Below, in pieces: positions 38,315 to 64,000 of a stretch of 64,000 nucleotides of DNA. Source of the stretch: Guillardia theta CCMP2712 (lineage: Eukaryota > Protista > Cryptophyta); contig NW_005434627.1 of assembly GCF_000315625.1 (NCBI RefSeq), forward strand, positions 512,592 through 576,591. Direction: 5' to 3'. A program made the translations under genes and the position numbers. Position 1 is the stretch's first letter, and each line of letters starts with the position of its first letter. A model generated the notes under the pieces. The model made no database searches. It was given only the letters and a program-made list of their open reading frames with translations, and was not told the DNA's origin.

Positions 38315-38452
38315 TTTAGGGTTTAGGGTTTAGGGTTTAGGGTTTAGGTTTCAAGGCTTCTCAGAAATTTGGTTTGCTGCAAGCGACCTTGTTTAGGGTT
38401 TAGGGTTTAGGGTTTAGGGTTTAGGGTTTAGGGTTTAGGGTTTAGGGTTTAG
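38315..38452 (+). repeat. interstitial telomeric (TTTAGGG)n tracts
   Basis: About 5 units at 38315-38348 and about 9 units at 38391-38452. Confidence 0.95.
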
Positions 38453-38979
38453 AGGCACCATGGCTGCACGAAGGCACCATGGCTGCACGTAGGCACCATG
38501 GCTGCACACAGGCACCATGGCTGCACGAAGGCACCATGGCTGCACGCGTGGTGTAGGGGAAGCCGCCAGGGCGCCAAGGAAGCTGCAAGCGAGAGGTTTG
38601 TATACTTCAAATAGCTTTCTAAGTATGGTTCTTCAGTATGATGAAAATGTTCGCAACATGCTGTATCGGAGATCATGCCAATACACGCAGGGCGAGCTTG
38701 TGGATGCCGCGGTCCTCGAAGCTGATCTTGTCGAGAAAGTGAAGAGCTTCGCGAAGCGGTATCCGAACAGTAGGACAGCTCAGGCTTGCAAGGCTGTTGA
38801 GGGATGCACCCCCGACGCTATAGCAATGACTGGATGGAGTGACGAACGAGGTGACTTCCTTCATCTCCATGACTCTCCTGGGCATCTCCTCGGTGTATGT
38901 CAACCATGAAGAGAAGCTGAAGAACTTCGGAAATTCGAAGAGATCGGACTGATCGTTCTACTTCTGCTGTCTTCTCTTG

Positions 38980-39263
38980 GCTTCCTCAGCCTCAGTCAGG
39001 AGAGTTGCCTCTCCTCACCTTGGCCTTCGGTCGCCACCTACTCTACCTCCATTCAGCTTCCTCAGCCTCAGTCAGGAGAGTTGCCTCTCCTCACCTTGGC
39101 CTTCGGTCGCCACCTACTCTACCTCCATTCAGCTTCCTCAGCCTCAGTCAGGAGAGTTGCCTCTCCTCACCTTGGCCTTCGGTCGCCACCTACTCCTCCT
39201 CCATTCAGCTTCCTCAGCCTCAGTCAGGAGAGTTGCCTCTCCTCACCTTGGCCTTCGGTCGCC
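38980..39263 (-). repeat. 76-bp tandem repeat (~3.7 copies) of the retroelement 3' region
   Basis: The same unit occurs at 49553-49836 and 53243-53375 on the + strand. Confidence 0.9.
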
Positions 39264-39814
39264 TCCTACCTTCTCTCCTTACCTTGAGCTCAGCTCAAGC
39301 TCGGTACGGGCTCGCCCCGTCTTCTTCCTCGCCCTCGCCTTGCTCTTCCTCCATGTCTTCCTCTTCTTCGTCATCTTCCCTCATCTCCACCCGCAGTCGG
39401 TCCTTCTTGTCCACTGGGCCTTCAGCGAGCAGGCCAGCACATGCATCTCTGCGAATTTACTCAGTGCTATGAACAGGAAGCTAAGAGATCGACGCTCTAT
39501 GTCGTCGCTCTCCGCCTCCTGCTCAAGCTCAGCAGCTGCCGTTGCCCGTGGCGAGAACGCGCTGCCCCTCCTTGCCTTCTTGCTCTCTCCTTGCACGCGA
39601 GTCCAGCGCTTGCTCTGCAGCCACTTCCCCAGCTTCTCCTTGAGAACGTTGCGTCCCACTCCCTGCTCCTCTGGCGTCTTCGCCCACTCTCCCAGCGACA
39701 TGAACTCCCTTGTCCTGCCTCCATTGTGATCCTCTCCAGGTCTGTGAACTCCAGCCACTCTCCCTCGCTCTCCGCCTGTCGCTGCGCTGCGTCGCTGGTG
39801 CCCCGCTGACCAGC

Positions 39815-41918
39815 CATTCTGGGGTCAAACCGCGGTAGTCGAACTTAACGCAAAAGAGGAATGCGTATGCTGTTCTCATAGGATACCGGTGGTAGTGTAC
39901 CCCTTGGTTTTTGAGGGGTGTTGCTCGGTAATATCAGTGGTAGGGGTGCTTCATATTTTGAACTGGCGTGTCCATTTGTTTTAACGACAATGAATTGTTT
40001 ATTCGAATACATAGTACAAACAGTTGTACTGTGTAACGGTTCATAACTGCTAATTTGTATCATCTAAAACAATTTTGATGACCCACCCTCATCGACAGGG
40101 TGGGGAAACGCTCCCCATCATTCCCATCGTCAATCGCACACCGACATGCTGAGCCGCCGGGCGAGCACAGCAGCAAGGTCAACGAGCTGCCGCCATGAGC
40201 ACAGATGAAGGACCGCCGAGTAAGAAGATGATCGCAAGGTACACTTGGCATCAAGAATCCAGCACAAATTCTTACTTGGTGATCTTGCAGAAGTGGATCA
40301 ATCAGCATGAGTTCGTCATCCTACATTTCCGACGACTAAGTCAATCGTATCATCAATGTTCTCTTCAAGACTTCTGGGCTCTCAGAGTAATGTACTTTAT
40401 CTAAAGACTCTCATGAACTGAATGATAATATCTGTAAGATCATGACGAGTCCGCTTAATTAAGGCGCAATCACATCTCACTTGACCCCCTCCTTGGCACG
40501 TCTTCTGTACGCTTCGTTACATCGTTGCTTCACATCTTCAGAACTTGAAGTTTGATGATATTTGATTCTTTAAAATATGCCAATTAGTTGACTCTGAGTC
40601 ACGAAGCTCTTGTTGAAGTATCTTCCCTCCTCTCTCCAAACTCTCCTCACTCAGGTCCTTTGGATGTTTGCACATTTGCTGAAATGCATGAACTTTGCTT
40701 TGCTTCCCTAAAGGCGGAGCTTGACGTCCAATTAAGCCTCAGATCATATCAGGGATCAAGTCTTGAGCTTGTAAGCTGGCATGCAAGAATCTATTGTGCG
40801 TTGCAACCAGACTGACATGGCCGCGTTGAATGTAGAATCAAGGTTGGAGGTGTTATGTGATTTGACATTTCTTATTCATTAGAAGCATTTATCTCAGCAT
40901 GTCGAACTACCAGCAAATTGACACGGACTCCCAGTCAATGATAATGACAACCACAATAGCATATGGAATGTCTCCAACTGCGCGCACAACAGAATGGAAG
41001 CACATCATGCTGCAGGTGCACTGCCATCCAACACCGTGCCGTTGGATTTGCTGTCTTCAAGAGTTGTCTACATTGTTTGTCATAAAGCGGCAAGGCTTTG
41101 AGCATGTGGACATGGATATATACAAGACTATGCATCTTTACAAAGTGTTTTTAAGTCATGCAACAAGAGATGCATCATTCAAAGGCGGAGAAGTTCAAAC
41201 ATGATGTGAAAAAGTCATGTGGCACAGTGAAGCATCTCTCATAAATATGATATTCCATCCAGCACATGAAGATGAAGGTCTTCGTGGAATAAAGGTCTTG
41301 GAATCTTGTAATACGTTTCAGCTGCAACCATTCAGAACCTAGTTCTCAACATCGCCAAGCTTTTGCTACCTGTTCACAACGATTAGAAAATGAACAATCC
41401 ACAGAAGAACTCTCTACCTGTGTGATGGAATGGGTTCATTTTCACCTTCTTCTCTCACAAAATACTTTCGAGTCTCTTCATGCTCGTGTGTGTTCGTGGT
41501 ATACTCGTCCCCTTCCATAGAAACAGACAACCGGCACAGAGGTTTTGACGAAGAGAGATGTTGATGAGGCTCACCTGCTGCGAGTGACTGCAACTTGGGC
41601 AAACATGCTCGCACAAAACTCAAACACTGAAGACAAGGATCGGCAGAGAAGAGCTTCGCGACATGAGAGAGGTATGGTGAGGGGAGACGCGCTGGGGTAG
41701 TGGGTGAAGGCGTGTAGAATTAAAACATTTTAGAAGGTACCAGGAAACGATGAGCTAAACATCCAAAATCAATTTTAATCACGGTTTTGAATATGGTTTG
41801 AATTTGAACAGTACAAAATTTCAACCTGCGCGAATCACACACCGTGTACCCCCATTTTCCCATTCACCACCCCCTTGAGAATATAGGACGAAAACTACCG
41901 CGGTTTGACCCCAGAATG
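39815..41918. mobile_element. degenerate DNA transposon with 25-bp perfect TIRs and 3-bp TSD AGC
   Basis: CATTCTGGGGTCAAACCGCGGTAGT at both ends, inverted. AGC at 39812-39814 and 41919-41921. The empty site GAGGCGGCTGGTCAG is present in the copies at ~44233 and ~52584. Confidence 0.92.
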
Positions 41919-44488
41919 AGCCGCCTCAGGCTCCTTGTCGAAGCCGACTGCTTCGAGCTTGGTGGCTGCGCCTTCTAGAGAGAAGGGCAGCTCCTTCATC
42001 ATGCGTCGAGCATCCTCCGTGGAGCCGAGGAAGATGCATAGCTTGGACCCGTTCCAGGACTTAGTGTTCAAATCCTCCTCCATGTCGATGCCTTCCACTT
42101 TGATCTCGAGCCTGTTAGCGATTTCCAACAAGACTCTCTTGACTCTTGCGATGGACGTGTTGCCGCCGTTGCACAGCCCCTCCATCTCCTTCCTCGTGAA
42201 GCGACCAGATGCCGCCGTCGACTTGATGATGATCTTGATCGCCTTGTCGTCGCTGCGGCCTGCCTTCTTCTGCATCCTGGATGCCTTCTTCAACTTATTT
42301 CTGGACACAAAGCGATCAGCTGTCAACTCGACTGCGAGCGCCTCTCTGATCTTCGGGTCCTCGCTGAACAGAGTCAGGTGTACTCCCTCCATCGCTTCGC
42401 TCTCTCGGAAAGCTAGACTCAGTGCAAGAGAGTAAAGCAATCATGTGGAAGGCTCCGTATAGATCCGAGATAGCGAGTGCTGATGAGATCCCGGTGACTG
42501 TTTCCTTCCTCCGCAATGCACAAGCGGAGAAGCTCTGGCAGGGAAGAGAGGACTTCGCGATCGATGGTCGCAAGTTCACAGCTGTACATGTGAGCATCGT
42601 GCACGATCGATCTTTCAAGATTCGAGCCAAGAGAGGACCCTGGGGCAAAGAGGGCAGCTTGGCAGAGCTGACTCACCTGCTAACCTTGGGCGGCATGACA
42701 ACAGCCGAAATAGCTGACGTCTACCGCTATCAGCTGCTGCGCCAGTCCCTTGCAGCGGTCCAACTCCAGCCGCTGGCAGGCATGCTGGTCGCTGGGGCGC
42801 CAGGCCAGCAAGTCCACAAAGGCTTAGGTCAGAAAGGCTTCGTCGCTGTAGGGGCCAACGTCATCTGGAGACAGAGGGAGGTGGAGTGGATCGTCTCCTC
42901 GAGCTGCCCAGAGGCGAATGATACAGCATTTCGAAGTAGAAAGAGACCTCAGAAGCAGGGTTCGCATTGTAGGCCGTGTACTCCCAGTGCTCGCGCGCCT
43001 CTTTAGACTAGGATCAAATTGCAAAAGCCCACAAGGAGGCCGAGCAACATTCTAGCATTCTAATAAACTCACATAATAATAATAATAGGGTTTAGGGTTT
43101 AGCCGTCTCTCCACCCCAGCCACCTCCTCCGCCACAAGCAATGCACACAGCGCCAACCTCGAAGACCGACAAGGAGACTAGGGGGGAGGAGAGGGGAGAG
43201 CGCAAGGGCACCGGAGGAAGCTGCGAGCAAGAGGTTTGTGCAGTTCAAACAGCTTTCTAAGTATGGTACTACAGTATGATGAGAGCGTTCGCAACCTGCT
43301 GTATCGGAAATCATGCCAATACACGCAGGGTGAGCGCTCAGGAGGCCACGTCGAAGAGGCCGACCTCGTCGAGAGAGTGAAGAGCTTCACCAAGCGTTAT
43401 CCGAATAGTCGGACAGCTCATGCTTGCAGAGCTGAGGGGGGATGCACTCCCGACGCTATCGCAGAAGCCATCCGCTCGACATGTCGGCAGGCGAGACGCG
43501 ACCTGTTTGAAGACTCTCTGAGCGCATGGAGCCCAGAGTCGAAAGCATGGTTCATGCAACAGATGAAAGAGGCCAAACAGCAGAATGTCGAGACTTACAT
43601 CGGCACCGAAGACACCGAGGAGACCTCCTTCATCTCCATGACTCTCCTGGGCATCTCCTCGATGTATGTGCGACAAGAAGAAAAGTTGAAAATGAAGTTG
43701 ACGGAGCTGGGACTCATAGTAGACTCAGTCGATAGAGACGACAAGTCCATCATGTGGAAAGCACCTTACAGACCTGAGATAGCACGAGCAGACGACATCT
43801 CAGTCACCATCTCCTTCCTTCGGAATGAAGAAGCCATCGCACTCTGGCAAGGCAGCAGAGAGTACAGCATGGACGGGCGAGTTTTCAGAGCAACTGAAGT
43901 CAGCATTGCACACGACCGGTCGTTCAAGCTCCGAGCCAAGCGAGGACCTTGGGGCAAGGGAGGGAGCCTTGCCGAGCTATCGCAGCTCCTAGCTCTTGGA
44001 GGAATGTCGACGGCGGACATAGCTCGGATCTATCAATTCCAACTGATCTCGCAATGTCTCGCCGCAGCAGAGGTACAACCGCTGGCGGGCATGCTCCTGC
44101 AGGGTGCTGGGCAGAGAGGTCGCAAAGGGCCGAGCCCGAAGACGGATGGTCGACGCATGATGAAGGAGCTGCCCTTCTCTCTAGAAGGCGCAGCAACCAA
44201 GCTCGAAGCAGTCGGCTTCGACAAGGAGCCTGAGGCGGCTGGTCAGCGGGGCACCAGCGACGCAGCGCAGCGACAGGCGGAGAGCGAGGGAGAGTGGCTG
44301 GAGTTCACAGACCTGGAGAGGATCACACATATCGGTCGGGATCTTGCCGCGCTAGTGCCCCTTGACATTGTTGTCGAAGGGGGGTTATTTGTATCATGGG
44401 GTGGTTTTGGGGTTTGAATTTTTATATTGAGAAAAGTTAGTTATCAGGACTTGGTCTATTCATATATGTTGTTTTCACTGGATTTTAC

Positions 44489-45823
44489 ATGTTTTTAGTT
44501 TTTGATTATGGTACTAAATCGCAACCCCTACCCCATCTTTTTCCTTTTGTATCCATGACCCGTATTGTGGGTTGGGGTACCACGGGCATCATCTCTCCTC
44601 TTGCTTCTCTCTCCTCTTCACGCATACTCCATAAGTCTGTCGCTGATCACGGCTGTAACAGACTTGAGATGCGTTCTCCAAGTCTGTTACGACACTCAGC
44701 ATTAAAAGGACGAGAGAGAATCAGAATTTCTTGTAGCGTCGCCCAACCAGACGACGTGGACGACGAACATGGCAATGGTGTACCCCAGACTCTCAAGCTA
44801 CCATTCTTCTTTCAAAGGATGTTCGTTAACAATAGGCCACAGAAATCTAATCCCGGTGTGTTTTACGACGAAACAAGCCATTTGAGTTTTGCCTTGCAGC
44901 CATCCATGGGAATTTCCTTCTTGGACGTAAACAAGCAAAATCGGTACGGTTTGATCAAAGAGGTTTCAAATGATTTTGTATCAGTTTACATTCTGTACAC
45001 CAAGGATGTTTTGCACGAAGTTCAACAGAATATCAAATCTCCAACAAGGTTGATTCAGATCAGAGATCGCATGGATGATTTCCACTGCTTGCAAAGCAGT
45101 TACATGGATGAGGTTCCAATGCAAGACATTCAAGGAATAGTGTCCATCAATTGTGCGCAAGTTTCTCTTAAAGGAATCTCGATGAAAAGCTTGCTCATTG
45201 TCGGGTGGTTGTATTTTGGCGTATCTGAACGCAAAAGTCAGGAATGTCAAGTTTCTTTCTTCAAGTCTTTCAAACTAACGGCGGATCATCTGCAGAATTA
45301 TTTTAACGTTTTGAACCGACATGTCCATATCGTTGATTCATTGTATTGGGAATTGTCCAAAGTCAGGCACAGTCTGCATAAATGGTTGCAGCTCAGAGGA
45401 AAACCCAAGGTTCGAAGTTTGGAAGCAGCAAAAGAAGCTCCCTTACGGTTCAATGTCGAACTTGCGGATGTGAACGCAATCTTGTTTTTATTGAAGCTTT
45501 GTCAAGCAGAAAATCAACAGGCCAGTGAGATCCAATGTTCGTATGTAAGCTACAGTACACTCGTCACATGCTCTTGGATCATACCTGAGACATCTTTGAA
45601 GTCATCCATCGTGCAACGGTATTTGAATATACCATTTAAGGAGTGCCCTCTCGAGCTTGCAAACTCTTCAGGATCGCTTTACGTAGAGGGGCCGTTAACG
45701 ATTAGCCTAAAGCGCTACAAATTTAGTCCTGGTTCGTTAACGTTCAAATGGGCAAAAATTTTCAGGCATGGATGGAATGGCAAAGAGATTTGGAGGTTCC
45801 CACCAATTACACAGAACGTATGA
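44489..45823 (+). CDS. transposon accessory protein with a BAH-like domain
   Basis: Open 444-aa ORF. RYGLIKEV..FVSVYILYTKDVL..LQSSYMDEVPMQDIQGIVSI fits the BAH pattern. The true start may be a downstream ATG. Confidence 0.7.
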   Translation: MFLVFDYGTKSQPLPHLFPFVSMTRIVGWGTTGIISPLASLSSSRILHKSVADHGCNRLEMRSPSLLRHSALKGRERIRISCSVAQPDDVDDEHGNGVPQTLKLPFFFQRMFVNNRPQKSNPGVFYDETSHLSFALQPSMGISFLDVNKQNRYGLIKEVSNDFVSVYILYTKDVLHEVQQNIKSPTRLIQIRDRMDDFHCLQSSYMDEVPMQDIQGIVSINCAQVSLKGISMKSLLIVGWLYFGVSERKSQECQVSFFKSFKLTADHLQNYFNVLNRHVHIVDSLYWELSKVRHSLHKWLQLRGKPKVRSLEAAKEAPLRFNVELADVNAILFLLKLCQAENQQASEIQCSYVSYSTLVTCSWIIPETSLKSSIVQRYLNIPFKECPLELANSSGSLYVEGPLTISLKRYKFSPGSLTFKWAKIFRHGWNGKEIWRFPPITQNV

Positions 45824-45884
45824 AATTTGCAGATTACGGCTCCTTTCCGCCTTTGCGATATCTTAAACTTTAACATTTAATTTA

Positions 45885-48421
45885 TTACATACCGCCTAAA
45901 CCTCCCTCTAAAATTTTTTTGTACTCAATTCCCTTTTTCTCTAAATTGTGCCAACTGTTCATCAATAACAAAGAAATGGCATAATACGACCACGCTGCCT
46001 CGAATGTGCAGTCATCTTCTGCAATTGGCTGATGAACTCCATCTTCTCTGCGACGCTTTCCGCTCATGAAAGCATTGATTTCTGTTAAGGCTTGAGCAAA
46101 TGAAGGTCTACCTTGCCAGCGATGTCTGTTTTCAACGTTCGACATATTCAACAATCCTAAAGGAATTCCACATTCTTCCATGATGCTTTCGAACTGATCA
46201 CCGATATGGCCGACGCACAAGCTATGGAAGTAAAATGACTGTAACATCTTCACGTCCCCAACGACGTCTATATATTTCACACACCAACTTCGAATCCTGG
46301 CTGGGATTTGCTTTGCTACTTCTAGATCAATTTTGTCTCGATGCTGTGTCATGAGTACGCTACTCAAAAAGGACCATTCTTCAACGACTTCATGCCATTC
46401 TTGTCTCTTCTCTGAATCAGTCTCATACAAGTAGTCAATAATCATTGGAGAATTCTTCAAAAATCTGGTACATTGCTCTCCATTCAATTGCCTGCGACCA
46501 GATTTGTCGTTAAACTGAACTGAAACACCGCGAGATTGTAATTCATCGTTGATGAAGGCGAGCTTCCTCAATTGTACAGCTCTTTCCTGCAACGCACATA
46601 TCATCGAGTTCACTATCCTTCCATGCATGTGCATCGTGCAGTGAATAAAAAACAATGGATTCATGCCTTGAATATTCTGTCTGCAAATGGGAACACGGCG
46701 CAGCATAGGAAACTTTGTACCTGGGGGAATAACTTTGCTTGGGTCCATCAAAGATTCCATGACTCTTGCTTGATTGTGGGTATCCATCATTTCTTGGAAT
46801 TCAGCGTAATCCGTCTCGTGAAAGGACTTGAAACAGGCTGGGTTTTTGCAATCTTCATTCAGACTCTGGATACTATCCATCACAATCCGATGTTTCTCAC
46901 AAAAGGTGATCAGATTGTCAGATTCAGTGACTGTCACGATTTTAAACCATGAACCGGCTCTGTGATCTGTAAGTAGCTCGGTGCAACACATGCAAAACAT
47001 CTTTTCAACATCTCTCATTCCACCAATATCGAAAATGTACCAGTGACCTTGCATGTCTGATCTCATTATGAACAGAACACTGATCACTTTGTCTGGATGT
47101 CTACCTTCGCGGCGCTTCTGCATCCCACCAGCAGCCTTGCCATCGAAAATTTGAATCCCATAAGTTTGCAGCTCCCGCAGTGCTGGTCCAAAGGGTACCC
47201 AAAAGCTTCGCTTAAAAACCTCAGGGCTATCAGGATGAGGCATGTAAGCAATTGTAAGCAAACAAGAAGATTCGCGAGCAAGCTTCTCCCAAAAGTTCCA
47301 TTCTCCGTCAGTGCAGTCACTCTGAAATGGGAGGATCGTTATGGTTACATCAGTGGCTTTCTTGTTATTGCCAGCAGAAAACGTAATGGTGGCTCCATCA
47401 TAATTGATACAGATAGTAAGCCGGTCTTTTCCAATCAGATGCAACAAATCGACAAGTTCTTCGACAGTTGAGATCAGATCAAGGTAATGAGTTCCATCCT
47501 CTGTGCAATTAATTTTCAACTTCCTAGTAAGGTCATGCTTGACCTCCACTCGCACCTGAGATATTTTATCATAATCTGGAAAGCATCCCTTGAGGCCATC
47601 CATTGATCGAAACCCTTCGTATTGTCGCTTTGTTATCCCCAATGAACTGAGATTTACAGCAATTTCATGCGGTGTTGGTACTAGGTGTCTTGCAGCGTGC
47701 TTCAAACCGTTTAAAAGGCCCAGATCTGAACCCAAAGATGTTTCCAACACGTTATTCACAACATTGCTCCTCAAGAATCCTTCAACGAAGTTTCTGCTTC
47801 TTGTTTTCTGCCTTTTGGCTTGGGATCCGTCTTGCGATGGGGAATCCGAATCCCCTTCAGTTTCTTCCAACTGCTCATCTGAGTCTTGTTCTCCAAGAAT
47901 ATCAAAGAAATGCCTCCACTTCACCTTACAGTTTGCCTTGTGCAGGCCACACAACCGATCAACTTTGTGCAGCAAGTAATCACGGATTGCTTTGAATTCT
48001 CTATTTACCTTTTTCCGCACAACTTGTTTTAGGTTTGCGTTCTTGATGGAAATGGTACTTGAAGGCCTATCCATAGGGTCCATAGCCTCGGACAAATTGA
48101 GCTCGGCAATTCCTTCAGCCAACACTTCGTCGAAGCATTTGCCAGAATTAGGGAGCGATTGCTTAAATTTTTCATCACCTACTGAAGATTATCATGATTA
48201 CAAGCTAGCAATGAAAAACACTTAAATGTGAACTTACCAAGAGCCTGTATGAATGAATTGACATCACCTTGACCTTTCCAAACACCATTTGCGTATACGA
48301 AACCATTTTTGAGCGCCAGCTGCTCGTAGCTGCGGAGAATCTCTCCCTTGAGCCATATGCGCTGTTCATCTCGCAACTCCTTGTGTTGCAAGGATGTTCT
48401 TCCAGTCTTTCGCCTTCCCAT
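45885..48421 (-). CDS. RAG1/Transib-like DDE transposase (~825 aa, 1 intron) with a LysM-like insert
   Basis: Exons 48421-48238 and 48178-45885 (GTAAG..TAG intron) stay in frame. Ordered motifs: INYDG, RSDMQ, FCMCC, HCTMHMHGR, LNGEQCTRF, YFHSLCVGHI, SNVENRH. Confidence 0.85.
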
Positions 48422-49552
48422 GAGTAGTTCTTTGTCTATAGATCAAAATCTCTCTGAAATTTTCAAGTTTTAGGCATGTTTTGAAGCCTATATTTCAAGC
48501 TATGCGTGCCTCGGTGCCAAGGCGGGAAATTCAAATCTTTAAACTCGGGGGGAGGGGGGTCACTACCCTACCCCACAAAAAGCCCCCAAAAGCACCTACC
48601 CTGCCTTTGTAGTACCAGAAATAGAAAGACAGTACAGATTCAAATTTAGAAAATGAGTAAGTTTGTACCATAATCATTGTTTACAATGTATAAGTCCCCT
48701 TTAAAAAAGATCCTCTTCTATAAGTCTCAGAGGGGGACTGCAGGTTGCTATTGTGTACCACCTGAAGCAGAGCCCGTCCACTACCCACCCTTACACCAAC
48801 AAAGCCAGGGAATTGATGGGGTGCAAGCAAGCTCTGACCACCCCCGATATGATTGGAACGAAGACCGGTATCCTTCGGAAGCAAGGGTGCAAAAGGGACA
48901 AATGATACCAGACCCGGCGTGCGAGAAAAGACCAATATGATGGAGGCAGCATCTCCGTCAAGCCAAGAGGACATGCAGCTCGTCAGCGAGCTGTCAGCAG
49001 TCATCGAAGATGCAGCTTCTTTGAACGAGGCGGGGACGAGCGAGCCGATCAAGCTGGTCCTGGACAAGGCCGTTGGCAACCTCTACGACACCTTCTACTC
49101 TCCGGGGAGCCTGGAGTTCATGTCGCTGGGAGAGTGGGCGAAGACGCCAGAGGAGCAGGGAGTGGGACGCAACGTTCTCAAGGAGAAGCTGGGGAAGTGG
49201 CTGCAGAGCAAGCGCTGGACTCGCGTGCAAGGAGAGAGCAAGAAGGCAAGGAGGGGCAGCGCGTTCTCGCCACGGGCAACGGCAGCTGCTGAGCTTGAGC
49301 AGGAGGCGGAGAGCGACGACATAGAGCGTCGATCTCTTAGCTTCCTGTTCATAGCACTGAGTAAATTCGCAGAGATGCATGTGCTGGCCTGCTCGCTGAA
49401 GGTGGACAAGAAGGACCGACTGCGGGTGGAGATGAGGGAAGATGACGAAGAAGAGGAAGACATGGAGGAAGAGCAAGGCGAGGGCGAGGAAGAAGACGGG
49501 GCGAGCCCGTACCGAGCTTGAGCTGAGCTCAAGGTAAGGAGAGAAGGTAGGA

Positions 49553-49836
49553 GGCGACCGAAGGCCAAGGTGAGGAGAGGCAACTCTCCTGACTGAGGCT
49601 GAGGAAGCTGAATGGAGGTAGAGTAGGTGGCGACCGAAGGCCAAGGTGAGGAGAGGCAACTCTCCTGACTGAGGCTGAGGAAGCTGAATGGAGGAGGAGT
49701 AGGTGGCGACCGAAGGCCAAGGTGAGGAGAGGCAACTCTCCTGACTGAGGCTGAGGAAGCTGAACGGAGGTAGAGTAGGTGGCGACCGAAGGCCAAGGTG
49801 AGGAGAGGCAACTCTCCTGACTGAGGCTGAGGAAGC
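49553..49836 (+). repeat. 76-bp tandem repeat with a GCAA-loop hairpin
   Basis: Unit GGCGACCGAAGGCCAAGGTGAGGAGAGGCAACTCTCCTGACTGAGGCTGAGGAAGCTGAATGGAGG(T/-)AG(A/G)GTAGGT. Confidence 0.9.
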
Positions 49837-49899
49837 CAAGAGAAGACAGCAGAAGTAGAAAGTAGAAAGAGACCTCAGAAGCAGGGTTTAGGGTTTAGG

Positions 49900-50104
49900 A
49901 GGCGCCGTTATTTTCGGCAGCATGGCTCCTCGTCAGGTGTTCAAATAGCTTTCTAAGTATGGTTCTTCAGTATGATGAAAATGTTCGCAACCTGCTGTAT
50001 CGGAGATCATGCCAATACACGCAGAGCGGACTTGTGGATGCCTCTGTCCTCGAAGCTGATCTCGTCGAGAGGGTGAAGAGCTTCGCGAAGCGTTATCCGA
50101 ACAG
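49900..50104 (+). mobile_element. 5' fragment of the telomere-associated retroelement ORF1
   Basis: MVLQYDENVRNLLYRRSCQYTQ...KRYPN follows a telomeric spacer; unrelated AT-rich DNA comes next. Confidence 0.75.
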
Positions 50105-51890
50105 AAATACAAGAAGAATCTCAACTTGTGAACGGAGTGCAAATATTAAAACTGCAGCATGACATCATGACTGCTGACTGTAAGGAAGTCTCAGAAACCT
50201 TGGTGGTGCCGAAAACTTGTTTTCAAAAAACAGAAATCTACAATCCTGTGAATAGAATTCGACGGAAGATGCTTATTGAACGCAGGTGAGGAATTCTGTG
50301 ATAATTACCTTCTATCTGTTGATTCGCATGTCAGGCTCTTGGAAACCTCGTTGCCTGCCAAAGCGAAGGGTGCAGTGCTGTGTTTTCCTATTTTCGAATG
50401 TAACTCAAATGAACCAGAAGTGCAAACACCAGGGTATATTGCTTCAGTTCTCATTTCAATTTTGACGAGTGATTTCAGAACGAATCTCCATTTTGACTCT
50501 GAAGATTGTGAGACGGCACATTGCTTTGACCTAATGACCAGGTATGACAAGTAATCATCAATGATCATGTTGAGTTTTAAAGTTTTTGTGCAGATCCAAT
50601 CGAGTTTCTCAGGTTATTGATGTAGAAATGGGTTGGCTGGTAACTCTTCCAGAGGATGACTCTCAAACATGAACAGAGAGGGGGTCAGGGGTTGGACGGA
50701 GAGGTATGCAGAAGCACCAAAATGTCTGGCAGCCTTCATCGTAGTGTCTTTGAACTAGAACATGTCATGGATTAACAAATGGCATTTCCATATGGCGGTC
50801 TTATGGAATCCAAAGGACATGCCATGCCTAACGATAGTGTCACTTGCCTGGTTTTCTCAATGATTTTGGATCTCAATAGTATTTGAATAGCAAATCTTGT
50901 GTTTATTAGCGATTCAACCGTTTCTAATCCTATCTTGTTCTCTCATATGGGACTTAAATTTACCGTGTAAAGATAATTTGAACTTCTTGGTTCTCTTGAC
51001 TTTTCCTTGCTAAATCTACCATGTTGCTTACAGTCGACACAGGTTCTTTGATAGAAGACAGTGTCAAATGCTATCACTGACTTGGAAGGCAACCGAGAAT
51101 GATTGAAACTTGAAATCATTGAGCATCTACTGAGTCAGATAGATGGACTCTCACAGGAGCAAAAGCCTTTAGGAGAGAGAGAGAACCCTAAACCCTAAAG
51201 GCAAGAGAAGAAGCTTGGCAGAGCTGACCCAGCTTTAATTCTTGGCTGAGAAACGTGATCATGACTGCAACATTCAGATACTCTTGCATACTGGTCGACT
51301 GGAGGAGGAAAGACCTGAACGACTTGGACAGCTTGTGCAACTTCAGAACTTTCGCTAGAAGAGCTGATCCGAAGACTGGAACACGAGGCCGCCAACGGCG
51401 GGCCGAACTGCCAGGTCACGAGATCCCTGTTAGACTAGAATAGGGCAAGGTGATAACAAGCCATGCAACCTACCTAGCATTCTAATAAACTCAACTACTA
51501 CCACGCATCATGGCTGCGCGCCAGGTGTAGGGGAAGCCGCCCGGGCGCCCTTCTACTCTGCGGGGAGCCTGAAGTTCATGTCGCTGGGAGAGGAACAAGA
51601 CATCAAAGAAGCAGAACCTTCCCTTCCCTCGGCGCCGTTTGCGAGGAAAGAAGATGACGATGAAGCCAAATAGAGATCCTACTGCAAATCGCTCAACATA
51701 TCAGCAAAACGCATAACAGCCCCCTCAACTCGCAAGCTTGGTGGGAGCATCTGACCACCGCCATGGCTGACATCCAAGATATACAGGAAGGCCTTCCGCT
51801 GTCATACGAATTCCTAGAACATTTAGGGATGCTCGCTGAAACAAAACAGTTCAGCAACTGGCCCATAGGGTATAGGGTTTAGGGTTTAGG

Positions 51891-51946
51891 ACCCGATGCG
51901 ACTACTCTAGCATTCTAATAAAATCGACTACTACTACTACTACTAC
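51891..51946 (+). mobile_element. 56-bp extreme 5'-truncated retroelement copy
   Basis: CTAGCATTCTAATAAA plus a (CTA)n tail, between identical 18-nt TAGGGTTTAGGGTTTAGG repeats at 51873-51890 and 51947-51964. Confidence 0.8.
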
Positions 51947-51964
51947 TAGGGTTTAGGGTTTAGG

Positions 51965-53550
51965 CATGCTGGTCGCTGGGGCGCCAGGACAGCACCACAA
52001 AGGCTTAGGTCGGAAAGGCTTCGTCGCTGTAGGGGCCAACGTCATCTGGAGACAGAGGGAGGTGGAGTGGATCGTCTCCTCGAGCTGCCCAGAGGCGAAT
52101 GATACAGCATTTCGAGCTTTCCGAGAGAGCGAAGCGATGGAGGGAGTACACCTGACTCTGTTCAGCGAGGACCCGAAGATCAGAGAGGCGCTCGCAGTCG
52201 AGTTGACAGCTGATCGCTTTGTGTCCAGAAATAAGTTGAAGAAGGCATCAAGGATGCAGAAGAAGGCAGGCGGCAAGGACGGCAAGGAGATCAAGATCAT
52301 CATCAAGTCGACGGCGGCATCTGGTCGCTTCACGAGGAAGGAGATGGAGGGGCTGTGCAACGGCGGCAACACGTCCATCGCAAGAGTCAAGAGAGTCTTG
52401 TTGGAGATCGCTAACAGGCTCGAGATCAAAGTTGAAGGCATCGACATGGAGGAGGATTTGAACACCAAGTCCTGGAACGGGTCCAAGCTCACGGAGGATG
52501 CTCGATGCATGATGAAGGAGCTGCCCTTCTATCTCGAAGGCGCAGCAACCAAGCTCGAAGCAGTCGGCTTCGACAAGGAGCCTGAGGCGGCTGGTCAGCG
52601 GGGCACCAGCGACGCAGCGCAGCGACAGGAGGAGAGCGAGGGAGAGTGGCTGGAGTTTACAGACCTGGAGAGGATCACAATGGAGGCAGCATCTCCGTCA
52701 AGCCAAGAGGACATGCAGCTCGTCAGCGAGCTGTCAGCAGTCATCGAAGATGCAACTTCTTTGAACGAGGCGGGGACGAGCGAGCCGATCAAGCTGGTCC
52801 TGGACAAGGCCGTTGGCAACCTCCACGACACCTTCTACTCTCCGGGGAGCCTGGAGTTCATGTCGCTGGGAGAGTGGGCGAAGACGCCAGAGGAGCAGGG
52901 AGTGGGCTGGACTCGCGTGCAAGGAGAGAGCAAGAAGGCAAGGAGGGGCAGCGCGTTCTCGCCACGGGCAACGGCAGCTGCTGAGCTTGAGCAGGAGGCG
53001 GAGAGCGACGACATAGAGCGTCGATCTCTTAGCTTCCTGTTCATAGCACTGAGTAAATTCGCAGAGATGCATGTGCTGGCCTGCTCGCTGAAGGTGGACA
53101 AGAAGGACCGACTGCGGGTGGAGATGAGGGAAGATGGCGAAGAAGAGGAAGACATGGAGGAAGAGCAAGGCGAGGGCGAGGAAGAAGACGGGGCGAGCCC
53201 GTACCGAGCTTGAGCTGAGCTCAAGGTAAGTAGAGAAGGTGGAGGCGACCGAAGGCCAAGGTGAGGAGAGGCAACTCTCCTGACTGAGGCTGAGGAAGCT
53301 GAATGGAGGAGGAGTAGGTGGCGACCGAAGGCCAAGGTGAGGAGAGGCAACTCTCCTGACTGAGGCTGAGGAAGCCAAGAGAAGACAGCAGAAGTAGAAA
53401 GTAGAAAGAGACCTCAGAAGCAGGGTTCGCATTGTAGGCCGTGTACTCCCAGTGCTCGAGCGCCTCTTTAGACTAGGATCAAATTGCAAAAGCCCACAAG
53501 GAGGCCGAGCAACATTCTAGCATTCTAATAAACTCACATGATAATAAAAA
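51965..53550 (+). mobile_element. 5'-truncated telomere-associated retroelement copy (ORF1 C-half 51966-53213, repeats, 3' UTR, tail)
   Basis: Starts mid-ORF1 directly after a telomeric spacer and ends CTAGCATTCTAATAAA..ATAATAAAAA. The 18-nt spacer is on both sides. Confidence 0.85.
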
Positions 53551-53657
53551 TAGGGTTTAGGGTTTAGGAGGCTCGCTTTCTTGGGGCAGGCTCGCTTTCT
53601 TGGGGCAGGCTCGCTTTCTTGGGGCAGGGGTTTAGGGTTTAGGGTTTAGGGTTTAGG

Positions 53658-54350
53658 AGGCCGCCGGACTCAAAAGCAGGCCGCCGGACTCAAAAGCAGG
53701 CCGCCGGACTCAAAAGCAGGCCGCCGGACTCAAAAGCATGCAGTCCTCCCCCACAGTTTGAGGGGGATCCTTGCGAGCTAGGGTGCTGAACAGGATATTT
53801 TTCTGTGCAGAAACGGTTGTTTGATCATGTGGTATCTATCCAAAGAGGAAAGGAAACAGATTGCTCGTGTCCGAGTTTCCCAGTTCCTAAACAAGGACAC
53901 GACACCTTCAGCACCTTCGCTAGGAGAGCTGATCCGAAGATTGGAACACTTCGTCAGGCAGTACCCTCAGAGCAGGACAGGCAGAGCCTTGCAGTCCAAG
54001 GAAGTCTCGATGAACGCCTTAGCCGAAGCCATTCGACAGACCTGCAAACATGCTGAAGTCAGGAGCCAGGAGGATGCCATCAAAGAATGGGGGGAAGAAG
54101 GACAGTCGTGGTATGTCTCTGCATGGAACGCAGACAAACAGGAGGTACTAGACAAGAGTGCCTCCATCGATGCTTCAGGAGCGTCTCCCGAGAATGGTAA
54201 ACTGATAACTATGGCTATCCTCGGAGTACCTGCTCAGTACATAAAACAAGTAGAAGTACTGTGCGCCAAGTTGAAGGACCAAGGACTCATGGTGCACGAG
54301 GAGCAGGGCAAGAAATGCATCTCGTGGAGAGCCCCGATCAAGAAAGATTT
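53658..54350 (+). mobile_element. diverged subfamily of the same retroelement (5' end and ORF1 N-part)
   Basis: 4x 20-bp leader. ORF 53821 aligns by eye with ORF1 43236: YPQSRT/YPNSRT, AEAIRQTC/AEAIRSTC, ISWRAP/IMWKAP. Confidence 0.75.
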
Positions 54351-59955: not shown

Positions 59956-60139
59956 GAGCTGGTCTTCTCTAAAAGCTCGTCAATCATCAGGCTGTTCTGA
60001 TGGTTGATAGTCCCGGTCGAGAAGCGGACGGTGCGAGCGCCGCGGGTTCCGCGCTGACCCGCCCTGAGGAGGCGGGTGCCGCTCAGGCACCATTCCATGG
60101 CATTTACTAATGCCCAATTATAAACTTATATCCTTTTAA

Positions 60140-63100
60140 CAAACACTTGTACCTGTTAATTTGATCATAAGCATACAGTTTTTAGTCAATTTTGTACCAG
60201 AATGATTTGTACCACTCAGTACTCTTTTATATTTGTTTTAAGCATTTGAGTTCCGGCTTACACGCCTCTTGGCTGCTCTCTACCCTGTGTACCGGTATGT
60301 TTGTCTGATATGGAGGGGGTTAGGTTATTCGTATATTTCGATACACGCTCATGAAATCTTATTAGTGTCAGCCATTGACGAGTGTAGTAAATCCAGCCAA
60401 TAAGTATTTTTGTTTTCAAATCAAGGAGTCGTATGCCAGCTAGCAACGGAAACCTTTTTTTTCTACACCGGTTGTTTTGTATGGATACCTACGGGTGCCA
60501 CCGAAACACAGGTCCCCTTGCCCCCGATCAAAAGGCAATTATTATAATAATAATTTTCAAGTGTGAAAATTCCAAAACAGGAGATTACAGGAGATTACAG
60601 TTCTTACAGGAGATTACAGGAGATTACAGACCAAAACAGGAGATTACAGTTCTTTATTGTCGGTTTTTCCATTTACTATAGAAGTAACATAAAAATTGTT
60701 CGGAAATGGACCCCACCCCTCCAAATCTATCATTTAGTACCCACCCCTGCATGTCGAACCCCCATCCCCACCCTCCGCTTTGTGTGGCCACCCGCCTCAG
60801 AGTGTCCAACACTTAGCCAAATTTTCACAGTTCGAGTCAACACACAACTTGAACGCATCGTTGCATCTTTACGGCCATGATTTTGTTGCATAGATACCTC
60901 AAGCTGTTGTAGCAATAGCAGGCGATTTTCCTCATTCTTTCCCTGAGACTGTTTAAAATAGTTGACAATCTCCTTGAATTCCACCTCCATCTTTTGCATC
61001 ATGCTGTCTTGCTTCAGTCTCAGCTGTTCATTGGCTGCCACCAGCTGTTCATTGGCTGCCACCAGCTGTTCATTGCCTGCCACCACTTGATCAAGCTTCT
61101 CTTGCAAAAGTTGTGTCTTCATCATCCACTGCTTTTCGTGAACCAGTGATGTGACATGAGGCGGACATCCAGTACTACGATAAATGGGAACCTGCACAGT
61201 GCACATCATGTTCTCGGAACTTTCATTCATCTCTATGGGTACGTCTGTAGGAAGCAGAACTAAAACTTGCTCTTTCAGCTGTTCATAAATTCCAGTATCC
61301 CGAAACAATGCGCAGCTCCATAATGGATGACTGGGGTCCAACTCCTTTCTCAAGTAATCGAAATGATACACAATGCTTGCTAAGCAATGTATCAGAATCC
61401 CATTCATATTCCCTGGCAATGTAGGAAAACATAACTGAATCGTACTCTGTACTAATTCATCATTTCCCTTCTTGAACTGTGGAGGTAATGACGCAAACAT
61501 CGCCGAATGAATGGGTAATCCACAGGCCGTACGACCAACAAACAGATCTGATGCAGCCTCGTACTTGAAGTAAGTCTTGGGAATTGTTCCGTTGTTCCAA
61601 CTGGCTCGGTCAGAAACCGCGGTAACTGATGGACAGTGAGTAGAACCACTTGTACAATACGTCGCTGCACCCTACACGTAGGGTTCAAACAATCTTCACA
61701 TCATCAATCAATATCTCACCTTTCGAATGGAGTGGGTGCCTAAATCCTCCTTGTTCATCCCAAGTCTTTGCAGCTCCTGACAGACAGCTTTCCGAATGGC
61801 TCGGTAATCATACGGAGCATCCTGTGCGTTAGAAGATTCATCACACTCACCCCGTTCGGGCAGTGTCATGACTTTCTGCAGACAATTGACAAAACGATGG
61901 TATTGACTGCCACCTATCATGCCCAAAAAATGCATCATTATCAACCACATTTCATGCCAAGTACACCTGGAAACAACTTCCTGGTGTCTGGAGAATGACT
62001 CATAAGGTACACACCCATAGCAAGAATGGGGCAAATTGCAGGACAGATCGGATTGGCATATATTGATTTCGGCTCGTTCCGTTCTCCAACTTGATCTGTC
62101 TTGCTATGAGGAAAACATATCCACATGTGATCGTCTTTCCATCCCATGTGTTGAAACAGAATCTCAGCCGTATTGACAGATCTGCAGATCAGATTCCAAC
62201 TTAGTATCAGGAAGGTACGACCAACTATTAAATCCATCTTCTTACATTTCAGCAACTCTCCACCCATTATGACATACAAACTAAAGGGTAATGGATCCTT
62301 GCCAGATGACAATTTCGTTCCACTCACGGCTCTCTCATCTGCGATGGTGTTCTGAAGACCTTTATAGAAATCGGCTATCTGAACGTCGAACTTTCTCCTG
62401 TACGTTTTGGTCTTGTGGTGCCTTCTATAGAAATGCCTAACACCTGATCTCAAAGCTACGTATGACGAGAATTTCAACTTTTTTTTCATCATGACATTTA
62501 CCACATAGCTGGTCCATTGCTTGTATGAGAACCTTCTCGTGTTGAATGGTAACAATTCTCTTCTCTTCAACAATTCTTTGATCTTCTTGGTAATTGGACC
62601 ACGATTTCTGGGTTCGTTGTCTAAACAACTCTTGAATTCGTGATTCAAACAAAATGGTTTGGTTTCATACAACCATGCAATCAGCTGACTTACAGAACTG
62701 AAGTAACATGCCTTCGAATTGTCCGAGAGCATCCTGTCTTTGACAGACTCGATTTTTTCTCTTGTTTCTTGTTCGTCCTCGCCTTCCATTTCCTCCACTT
62801 CCTCGTTATCGTCCTCGTCGTCGTCTTCTTCTGTGATCGTTCTCCTTGTTGCATACCCGTCTAGTTCTGTTAGTCCCTGAAACGTATTCTGTGATCGTTC
62901 TCCTTGTTGCATACCCGTCTAGTTCTGTTAGTCCCTGAAACGTATTCCACAATTGATTCCGCGATTTGTTCTTCAGAGATGGAAGGAACAACTTTTGGGG
63001 TTTGCTGCTGCGCTGAAGTTTTTGGTCCCTTTGTTCCTTTTGGGTTGCGAGTCGAGCAACCACAATCACTCCACTCTTCACTCCATTCACTAGCACAAAG

Positions 63101-63960
63101 ATGATGAAACATGTTTGAGCAGACAGTACATTGATACAGTTGAGCTGCGTCGTCCCTAACCTTGCATCGTGAACCGAACAAGCATTTCTGACGGCTACCT
63201 TGTGATCCAGCGGCTGTGGCCATGCTGAGCGATTTGCGCGGGTTGCAGGTATGAAAGGGGGGGTGGGGGGTGGAGGGGGCCGGGGGCTGCAATAAACTAC
63301 TACGCAGGAGGCTCAGGATTTAGGGGGTAGGAGCAATTAGAGGTCCAGAGTTGAGTGAAAAAAAATCTCTAATTGAAATTTCCTGTTTTGGTCATGATGT
63401 TTTTCAATAAATTTTTACAAATAAGACATCCCCTCTGTCAACCCGTAAAAGTAGGGGTACTCAGATTCCGCACCCCTAAAATAGTTTTAATAAAGTTTGG
63501 GATTTCAGGAAATCCGGCGGACAGGAATTTGAACTAGGAAAAATCCTGAAAACGCTAGCTAATTGCCTTTTGATCGGGGGCAAGGGGACCTGTGTTTCGG
63601 TGGCACCCGTAGGTATCCATACAAAACAACCGGTGTAGAAAAAAAAGGTTTCCGTTGCTAGCTGGCATACGACTCCTTGATTTGAAAACAAAAATACTTA
63701 TTGGCTGGATTTACTACACTCGTCAATGGCTGACACTAATAAGATTTCATGAGCGTGTATCGAAATATACGAATAACCCTACCCCCTCCATATCAGACAA
63801 CTTACCGGTACACAGGGTAGAGAGCAGCCAAGAGGCGTGTAAGCCGGAACTCAAATGCTTAAAACAAATATAAAAGAGTACTGAGTGGTACAAATCATTC
63901 TGGTACAAAATTGACTAAAAACTGTATGCTTATGATCAAATTAACAGGTACAAGTGTTTG
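60140..63960. mobile_element. tyrosine-recombinase element with ~400-bp TIRs and flanking TTTAA direct repeats
   Basis: 60140-60541 is a near-perfect inverted copy of 63560-63960. TTTAA occurs at 60135-60139 and 63961-63965. Confidence 0.9.
60730..63223 (-). CDS. Crypton-type tyrosine recombinase with an N-terminal PHD-like finger and a C-terminal coiled coil
   Basis: WNLICRS, HSKTDQ, ANPICPAICP, LFPG|GSQY (intron 61914-61966), THSIRK|GAATY (intron 61672-61719), RASW..TYFKY, FASLPPQF. PHD-like CTVCSNMFHHLC. Confidence 0.85.
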
Positions 63961-64000
63961 TTTAAGTAGAGATAGACAGATGGGCTGCGAGTGAAAATCG

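Follow-up and report, generated by a model that had tools for sequence, protein, structure and literature searches.

A RAG1-fold transposon with a convergent BAH-fold gene in Guillardia theta probably belongs to an undescribed CMCT lineage

The CMCT clade of transposons takes in CACTA, Mirage, Chapaev, Transib, Plavaka, ESTA as well as Lanisha, and a single series of transposase motifs marks the whole of it (PMC12730594). Its criteria are an aspartate-aspartate-glutamate (DDE) triad that has C(2)C and H(3-4)H motifs after its second D and before its E, 5′-CA..TG-3′ ends, and target site duplications (TSDs) that span 2–5 bp (PMC12730594). RAG-like (RAGL) and Transib elements make 5-bp TSDs and have ends that resemble recombination signal sequences (RSSs; PMC10629977, PMC9435367), PlavakaB elements have CATCA..TGATG ends and 2–3-bp TSDs, and fungal CMCT elements carry TET/JBP genes that are thought to evade silencing (PMC12730594). 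Still to be explained in RAG evolution is the gain of a chromatin-linked partner (RAG2) by a single-gene transposase, to which the algal family described here would be an independent parallel. We analyzed a 64,000-nt stretch of the cryptophyte Guillardia theta CCMP2712 (the window; contig NW_005434627.1, positions 512,592 to 576,591, forward strand), in which a 4,612-bp transposon (44328–48939) contains two intact convergent genes, one for a transposase with a RAG1-like predicted fold and one for a partner with a predicted BAH fold. We consider it probable that this is an autonomous cut-and-paste DNA transposon from an undescribed CMCT lineage of cryptophytes and green algae that has a BAH-fold accessory gene and, within its transposase, a LysM-like insert.

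The boundaries of the element are fixed by unoccupied sites. Both flanks belong to one multi-copy host repeat, and across all contigs of the assembly (87.1 Mb, 669 contigs) 23 empty copies of this repeat run directly from GGATCACA into ATGGAGG. Because these 23 copies are uninterrupted, the insert is exactly 44328–48939, and its junction is unable to slide. The 4,612-bp span, the 10-bp terminal inverted repeats (TIRs) and the tail-to-tail genes with stop codons 61 bp apart (45824–45884) described in the first-pass annotation are confirmed. Public reads include a joint, 44327>48940, that skips exactly 4,612 bp with CA..TG ends, and copies from another strain align over exactly these bases. The left TIR (CATATCGGTC, 44328–44337, plus strand) and the reverse complement of the right one (CATATTGGTC, 48930–48939, minus strand) are alike at 9/10 bases and do not extend past 10 bp; a match this good at two fixed ends has a chance probability of about 3e-5. 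An identical left end lies at an independent, unrelated site on contig C113, and the identical right end has new flanks in two other-strain copies (L090/L091). Site-specific targeting of the host repeat was rejected since other copies have other flanks.

Termini of the form CAT…ATG, and hence the CA..TG of the CMCT clade, occur in every family with intact ends. Exact 3-bp TSDs flank 3/7 genomic elements (gtt, cac and tca at C154, C19a and C19b; chance 1e-4); a duplication within the 2–5-bp range of the clade is thus present as 3 bp in relatives and absent at the 44328–48939 insertion. Neither a 5-bp TSD nor a CAC end was seen in the ~10 elements examined. Cross-pairing the flanks of L090/L091 yields CGC and CCG duplications, and one contig shows such a pairing, although the procedure rests on collapsed assemblies. 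Given the 3-bp duplications of relatives, a 3-nt stagger is the most likely mode of cutting for the family, and the window insertion would have lost its duplication or never filled it. In one empty host copy (L019, G000:C89:349521-349525), the exact point of insertion is occupied by 4 extra bases that form a palindrome, CACAA-C-TTGTG, a single case compatible with the footprint of a hairpin-opening excision. In the copy at G000:C56 (L073/L074), the right end lacks its last 38 bp, and next to it the left flank is repeated over ~33 bp, either an aberrant one-ended insertion or a repair product.

The transposase is encoded on the minus strand in two exons. Exon 1 (48238–48421, 61 codons) encodes a basic N-terminus and diverges by 3.3% from the other sample, as coding parts do, while exon 2 (45885–48178) contains the RNase H DDE core and zinc motifs. 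Between them lies a predicted 59-nt GT..AG intron (48179–48237), inside which the other sample has a 1-bp deletion. Its removal preserves the frame and gives 825 aa; the public gene model also has this intron and takes an acceptor at a distance of 3 nt (56 nt, 826 aa). Read coverage of the intron was nil in the reads used. All searches used exon 2 only as query, exons were joined only to check the frame, and residues are numbered from the GTG at 48125. As the first-pass annotation claimed, the 746-aa open reading frame (ORF) contains YDG, SDM, CMCC, CTMH, LNG, YFHSLCVGH and VENRH in that order. The predicted catalytic residues, with roles inferred, are D243 (YDG, 47397–47399), D357 (SDM, 47055–47057) and E665 (VENRH, 46131–46133), and the C(2)C (C378 and C381, 46983–46994) and H..H (H634 and H640, 46206–46226) zinc motifs lie after the second D and before the E, as in the CMCT clade. 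Together with H499, G549, Y632 and H668, these residues are invariant among 24 homologues down to 16% identity; the two H of the H..H motif are spaced by 5 in G. theta copies but by 4 in distant relatives.

Structural comparison of the predicted transposase (predicted local distance difference test, pLDDT, 78) supports the earlier assignment to a RAG1/Transib-type enzyme. All 49/49 Foldseek matches at E ≤ 1e-3 are RAG1, BbRAG1L or HzTransib (best E 9e-9), and structural Z scores are 17.4–17.8 for RAG1 (the best among solved structures), 12.5 for HzTransib, 11.0 for the P element and 7.6 for Hermes. Predicted structures from other CMCT lineages also have a RAG1-like core, which is therefore not specific to RAGL: TMq is 0.56 for CACTA, 0.50 for Plavaka and 0.49 for a RAG1 RNase-H cluster, and the top scorers are unnamed clusters. 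At the sequence level, there was no RAG1 match in Pfam or the PDB, even with a 24-sequence profile; no Pfam match of the family to any described transposase lineage with single proteins or profiles; no match to PF18759 or PF02992 in 13 family members; no DUF4218 match to the transposase; no Pfam or PDB sequence match for transposase or partner, single or profile; and no match in a viral fold library or viral contigs. A word-index protein search returned only near-identical matches or matches at cryptophyte level.

A LysM-like insert follows the C(2)C motif (46701–46946, minus strand). In the model's secondary structure it runs strand-helix-helix, 40-aa loop, strand, with an invariant N423 and a near-invariant G469. 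Pfam LysM matches the insert in relatives at E 9e-4 to 0.1, below the cut-off (19.6 vs. 20.9 bits), and does not match the segment in the window protein; the family profile matches the LysM protein LytE (E 0.0016), and UniRef labels green-algal members "LysM domain-containing". The insert may be a lineage marker.

The partner gene lies on the plus strand (44669–45823) and encodes 384 aa from a probable ATG at 44669. Its frame is open from 44489, but a start there was rejected because a copy from another strain carries six small indels within 44538–44638. The AlphaFold2 model (pLDDT 80) comprises a BAH-fold domain (44831–45265) and a family-conserved C-terminal helix and beta domain (45266–45820). 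Foldseek matches the Sir3 BAH domain at E 2e-6, and VIA aligns 119 residues with the ORC1b BAH domain (Z 11.0, root-mean-square deviation 3.3 Å); every protein in the first 50 Foldseek rows and the first 19 VIA rows contains a BAH domain, and the next fold scores Z 5.1. The modeled N-terminal half (~145 aligned residues) thus clearly carries a BAH fold, as the first-pass annotation had suspected. No kelch propeller is among the structural matches, and there is no RAG2 in the element. Residues 22–166 share the fold of the BAH domains of Sir3, ORC1, ASI1, EBS/SHL and DNMT1 (Z 8–11) at only 7–17% identity; neither Pfam BAH nor an Atlas feature search matched the partner. Two positions that, by the BAH motif, we take to be those of the methyl-lysine aromatic cage are Arg and Ile in the partner. 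Reading of a methyl mark is therefore doubtful, and binding to the nucleosome surface or to a protein would be favored. The gene also contains a cryptic 41-nt GT..AG intron (44944–44984, plus strand) whose splicing would destroy the BAH domain; as a productive form it was rejected, since invariant residues are lost and the frame is shifted.

The two genes travel together across the genome. Among 15 long open transposase relatives (22–100% identity), 14/15 have a convergent partner homologue beside them and the fifteenth is truncated, and ten broken copies likewise retain partner sequence. A one-off capture of the partner is thereby rejected, and the two-gene family proposed at first pass is borne out. 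Trees of nine transposase–partner pairs are compatible, with a correlation between pairwise identities (rho 0.82; P = 3e-4, Mantel test); linked genes share a history regardless, and compatible trees therefore mean co-inheritance, not interaction. Copies from the other sample are 95% identical over exactly 4,612 bases with different flanks and diverge by ~3% in coding parts and 7–10% outside; frame-breaking indels avoid 44669–45823 and both transposase exons. In this comparison the transposase has a ratio of nonsynonymous to synonymous divergence of 0.27, and the partner one of 0.21. At the level of sequence, these results show that the partner is co-inherited and under selection with the transposase.

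The family extends well beyond G. theta. Among 1.8 billion proteins searched with a profile there are 140 relatives, from Hanusia, Cryptomonas, Cymbomonas, Klebsormidium and Mesostigma along with many metagenomic proteins. Three metagenomic transposases with ~18% identity adjoin genes of one family that is a homologue of the partner (for L085, hhalign 93% and E 2e-7; L083 by itself is weak), in convergent orientation in 2/3 and in tandem in 1/3. We also observed a 9.7-kb element (L088:98-9829) with perfect 14-bp CATTGCATTTCC… ends, ct/ct flanks, a distant (16%) transposase relative and no detected partner, and, near the C19b element, 414 bp from the right end of another family (L080:1437-1850).

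Recent mobility is supported by copies that are nearly identical but differ in site and in sample. Independent DNA reads reach a depth of 154 over the left part of the element and of 101 over its right part, which would fit about three copies of which one is truncated. A second copy with the same host junction (L032, G000:C497) is either a segmental duplicate or an assembly duplicate. In a probable RNA assembly, low-depth contigs cover both genes; one of them is spliced at 44944–44984 in the sense of the partner, a non-productive event that suggests that the partner is transcribed.

Transposition would proceed as follows, by extension from RAG/Transib biochemistry. A transposase dimer would bind both ends and nick them, the flanks would be sealed as hairpins, and insertion would occur with a 3-nt stagger. 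In the weakest step of this scheme, the partner would be a required accessory subunit bound to the transposase, and its BAH domain would contact the nucleosome surface or a chromatin protein and thereby license excision or choose targets, a role analogous to that of the RAG2 PHD domain and acquired independently. A fuller version, in which the family is a superfamily-level RAG1-fold branch of cryptophytes and green algae whose transposase has a LysM-like module inside and works only with a nucleosome-reading BAH subunit, is one that we hold tentatively. If true, a design that combines a RAG1-type enzyme with a chromatin-reader subunit would have been invented a second time, independently.

The element sits in a host array (38315–54350) made up of a multi-copy element, often close to contig ends, whose junctions carry telomere repeats (TTTAGGG). 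The ~750-aa ORF of this host element, interrupted here into a left (43236–44327) and a right part (48940–49521, both plus strand), reads through in frame at empty sites, has no Pfam match, and is represented in RNA far above the transposon. Tandem repeats of 76 bp lie at the tail of the host element, at 49471–49912 and 38956–39269. Elsewhere in the window, a 3.8-kb block (60135–63965) lies between 407-bp inverted repeats (98.8%).

Several observations weigh against an autonomous transposon from an undescribed CMCT lineage. Compared with empty host sites, the TSD at 44328–48939 is zero bp, and the other 4/7 elements have cct/ctt, ggc/gcg or, in two cases including the window copy, no duplication. 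In a language-model feature search, RAG1 clusters share the top rank (0.95) with an unnamed cluster. Expression is very low, with a 2026 RNA run nearly blank over the transposon. The partner was not detected at Cymbomonas, Klebsormidium and four other distant loci, some of them spliced or at a contig edge, and ~15 intact open partner-like ORFs (BAH plus helix part) have no nearby transposase match (G000: C28:676429, C183:84452, C2:38506, C4:961952, C169:60710, C12:579045, C113:93080, C75:295557, C41:498169, C30:413882, C307:14695, C103:95950, C191:60972, C106:152864); these may be non-autonomous elements in which the partner is retained, or they may serve a different enzyme. Against these points stand the CAT…ATG ends, insertion at many sites, the relatives' 3-bp duplications, an intact DDE enzyme with C2H2 zinc motifs and a co-inherited partner. 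The solo ORFs also fit a partner that acts outside the cutting complex as an anti-silencing passenger, binding element chromatin or a host silencing protein to sustain expression, as do the TET/JBP genes of fungal CMCT relatives (PMC12730594) and the silencing-protein BAH folds among its matches (Sir3, ASI1, DNMT1); a physical partner, however, would better explain how tightly the gene diverges along with its cognate transposase across very deep distances, and we regard the passenger role as rather unlikely.

Alternative placements of the transposase fare worse. A very diverged Transib/RAGL branch, in which RAG2L was replaced or never present and a BAH gene was taken instead, would agree with the uniform Foldseek list, the RAG1 clusters at the top of the feature search and the convergent layout shared with ProtoRAG. 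However, the PDB match lists hold no CACTA, Plavaka or Chapaev competitor and predicted ones tie, the ~10 elements examined have neither 5-bp TSDs nor CAC ends, and RAG1 went unmatched at the sequence level in Pfam and the PDB, 24-sequence profile included, which makes such a branch quite unlikely. We find no likelier a diverged member of a named CMCT lineage (PlavakaB, EnSpm, ESTA or Lanisha), perhaps already in Repbase: the ends and TSDs of PlavakaB (PMC12730594) and the TMq of 0.50–0.56 for Plavaka and CACTA models point that way, but PF18759 and PF02992 match none of 13 members, only CAT is common to the ends, ESTA duplicates TA, and no cryptophyte element is recognizable in the PMC12730594 tree. 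The literature on Guillardia RAG1 and on BAH with Transib, Plavaka or CACTA gave no account of the family or of any CMCT element paired with a BAH gene, with Repbase and the original Plavaka paper outside the search, and the supplements of PMC9435367 mention neither Guillardia, cryptophytes nor BAH. Zero duplication at the window site could also suggest a Spy-like element that makes none, or two host genes that happen to lie within an inverted repeat. The relatives' 3-bp duplications led us to reject the Spy-like element, and with the RAG1/CMCT-type fold and multiple independent insertion sites they leave this explanation a next to negligible probability.

The undescribed CMCT lineage that we favor is best seen against its known counterparts. 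Like ProtoRAG and other RAGL elements (BbeRAGL, AanRAGL; PMC10629977, PMC9435367), the G. theta element combines a RAG1-like core fold and a D-D-C(2)C-LH-H..H-E motif order with two convergent genes within TIRs, and AanRAGL is a precedent in a microalga. Unlike them, it has a BAH-fold partner in place of kelch/PHD RAG2L, 10-bp CAT ends with no heptamer or nonamer in place of RSS-like CAC ends, TSDs of 3, possibly 2, or 0 bp in place of 5, ~10% identity in structural alignment, and a LysM-like insert. Transib (HzTransib) is alike in fold (Z 12.5) and motif order but has a single gene, CAC ends and 5-bp TSDs. EnSpm/CACTA elements share 3-bp TSDs, the motif series, a predicted fold at TMq 0.56 and the possession of two proteins (TnpA and TnpD), whereas the family here lacks CACTA or CAC ends and PF02992 or DUF4218 matches and has a separate convergent BAH gene. 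The TA duplications made by ESTA were not seen in it. PlavakaB is close in its CAT…ATG ends, 2–3-bp TSDs, C(2)C and H..H motifs and predicted fold (TMq 0.50), but it is fungal with no BAH partner mentioned (PMC12730594), and the family here has no PF18759 match; Plavaka ends are TGT..ACA or CATCA..TGATG, and those here lack CATCA and differ after CAT.

The CMCT clade would thus gain an algal lineage that sequence search does not recognize, and many intact, diverged pairs in a culturable alga make partner dependence, specificity and targeting testable by partner swaps. A RAG1 fold and convergent genes are insufficient for a ProtoRAG label. The first-pass annotation was right about both, but one distant relative is tandem, and the specific tie to ProtoRAG/Transib is not supported, given a motif series that is clade-wide (PMC12730594) and CACTA and Plavaka predicted structures that score as well as the RAG1 cluster. 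"ProtoRAG-like" is overstated because of these comparisons, the CAT ends, the 3-bp or missing duplication and the absence of RAG2: the RAG1-fold element is probably a cousin lineage of RAG transposons, not one of them.

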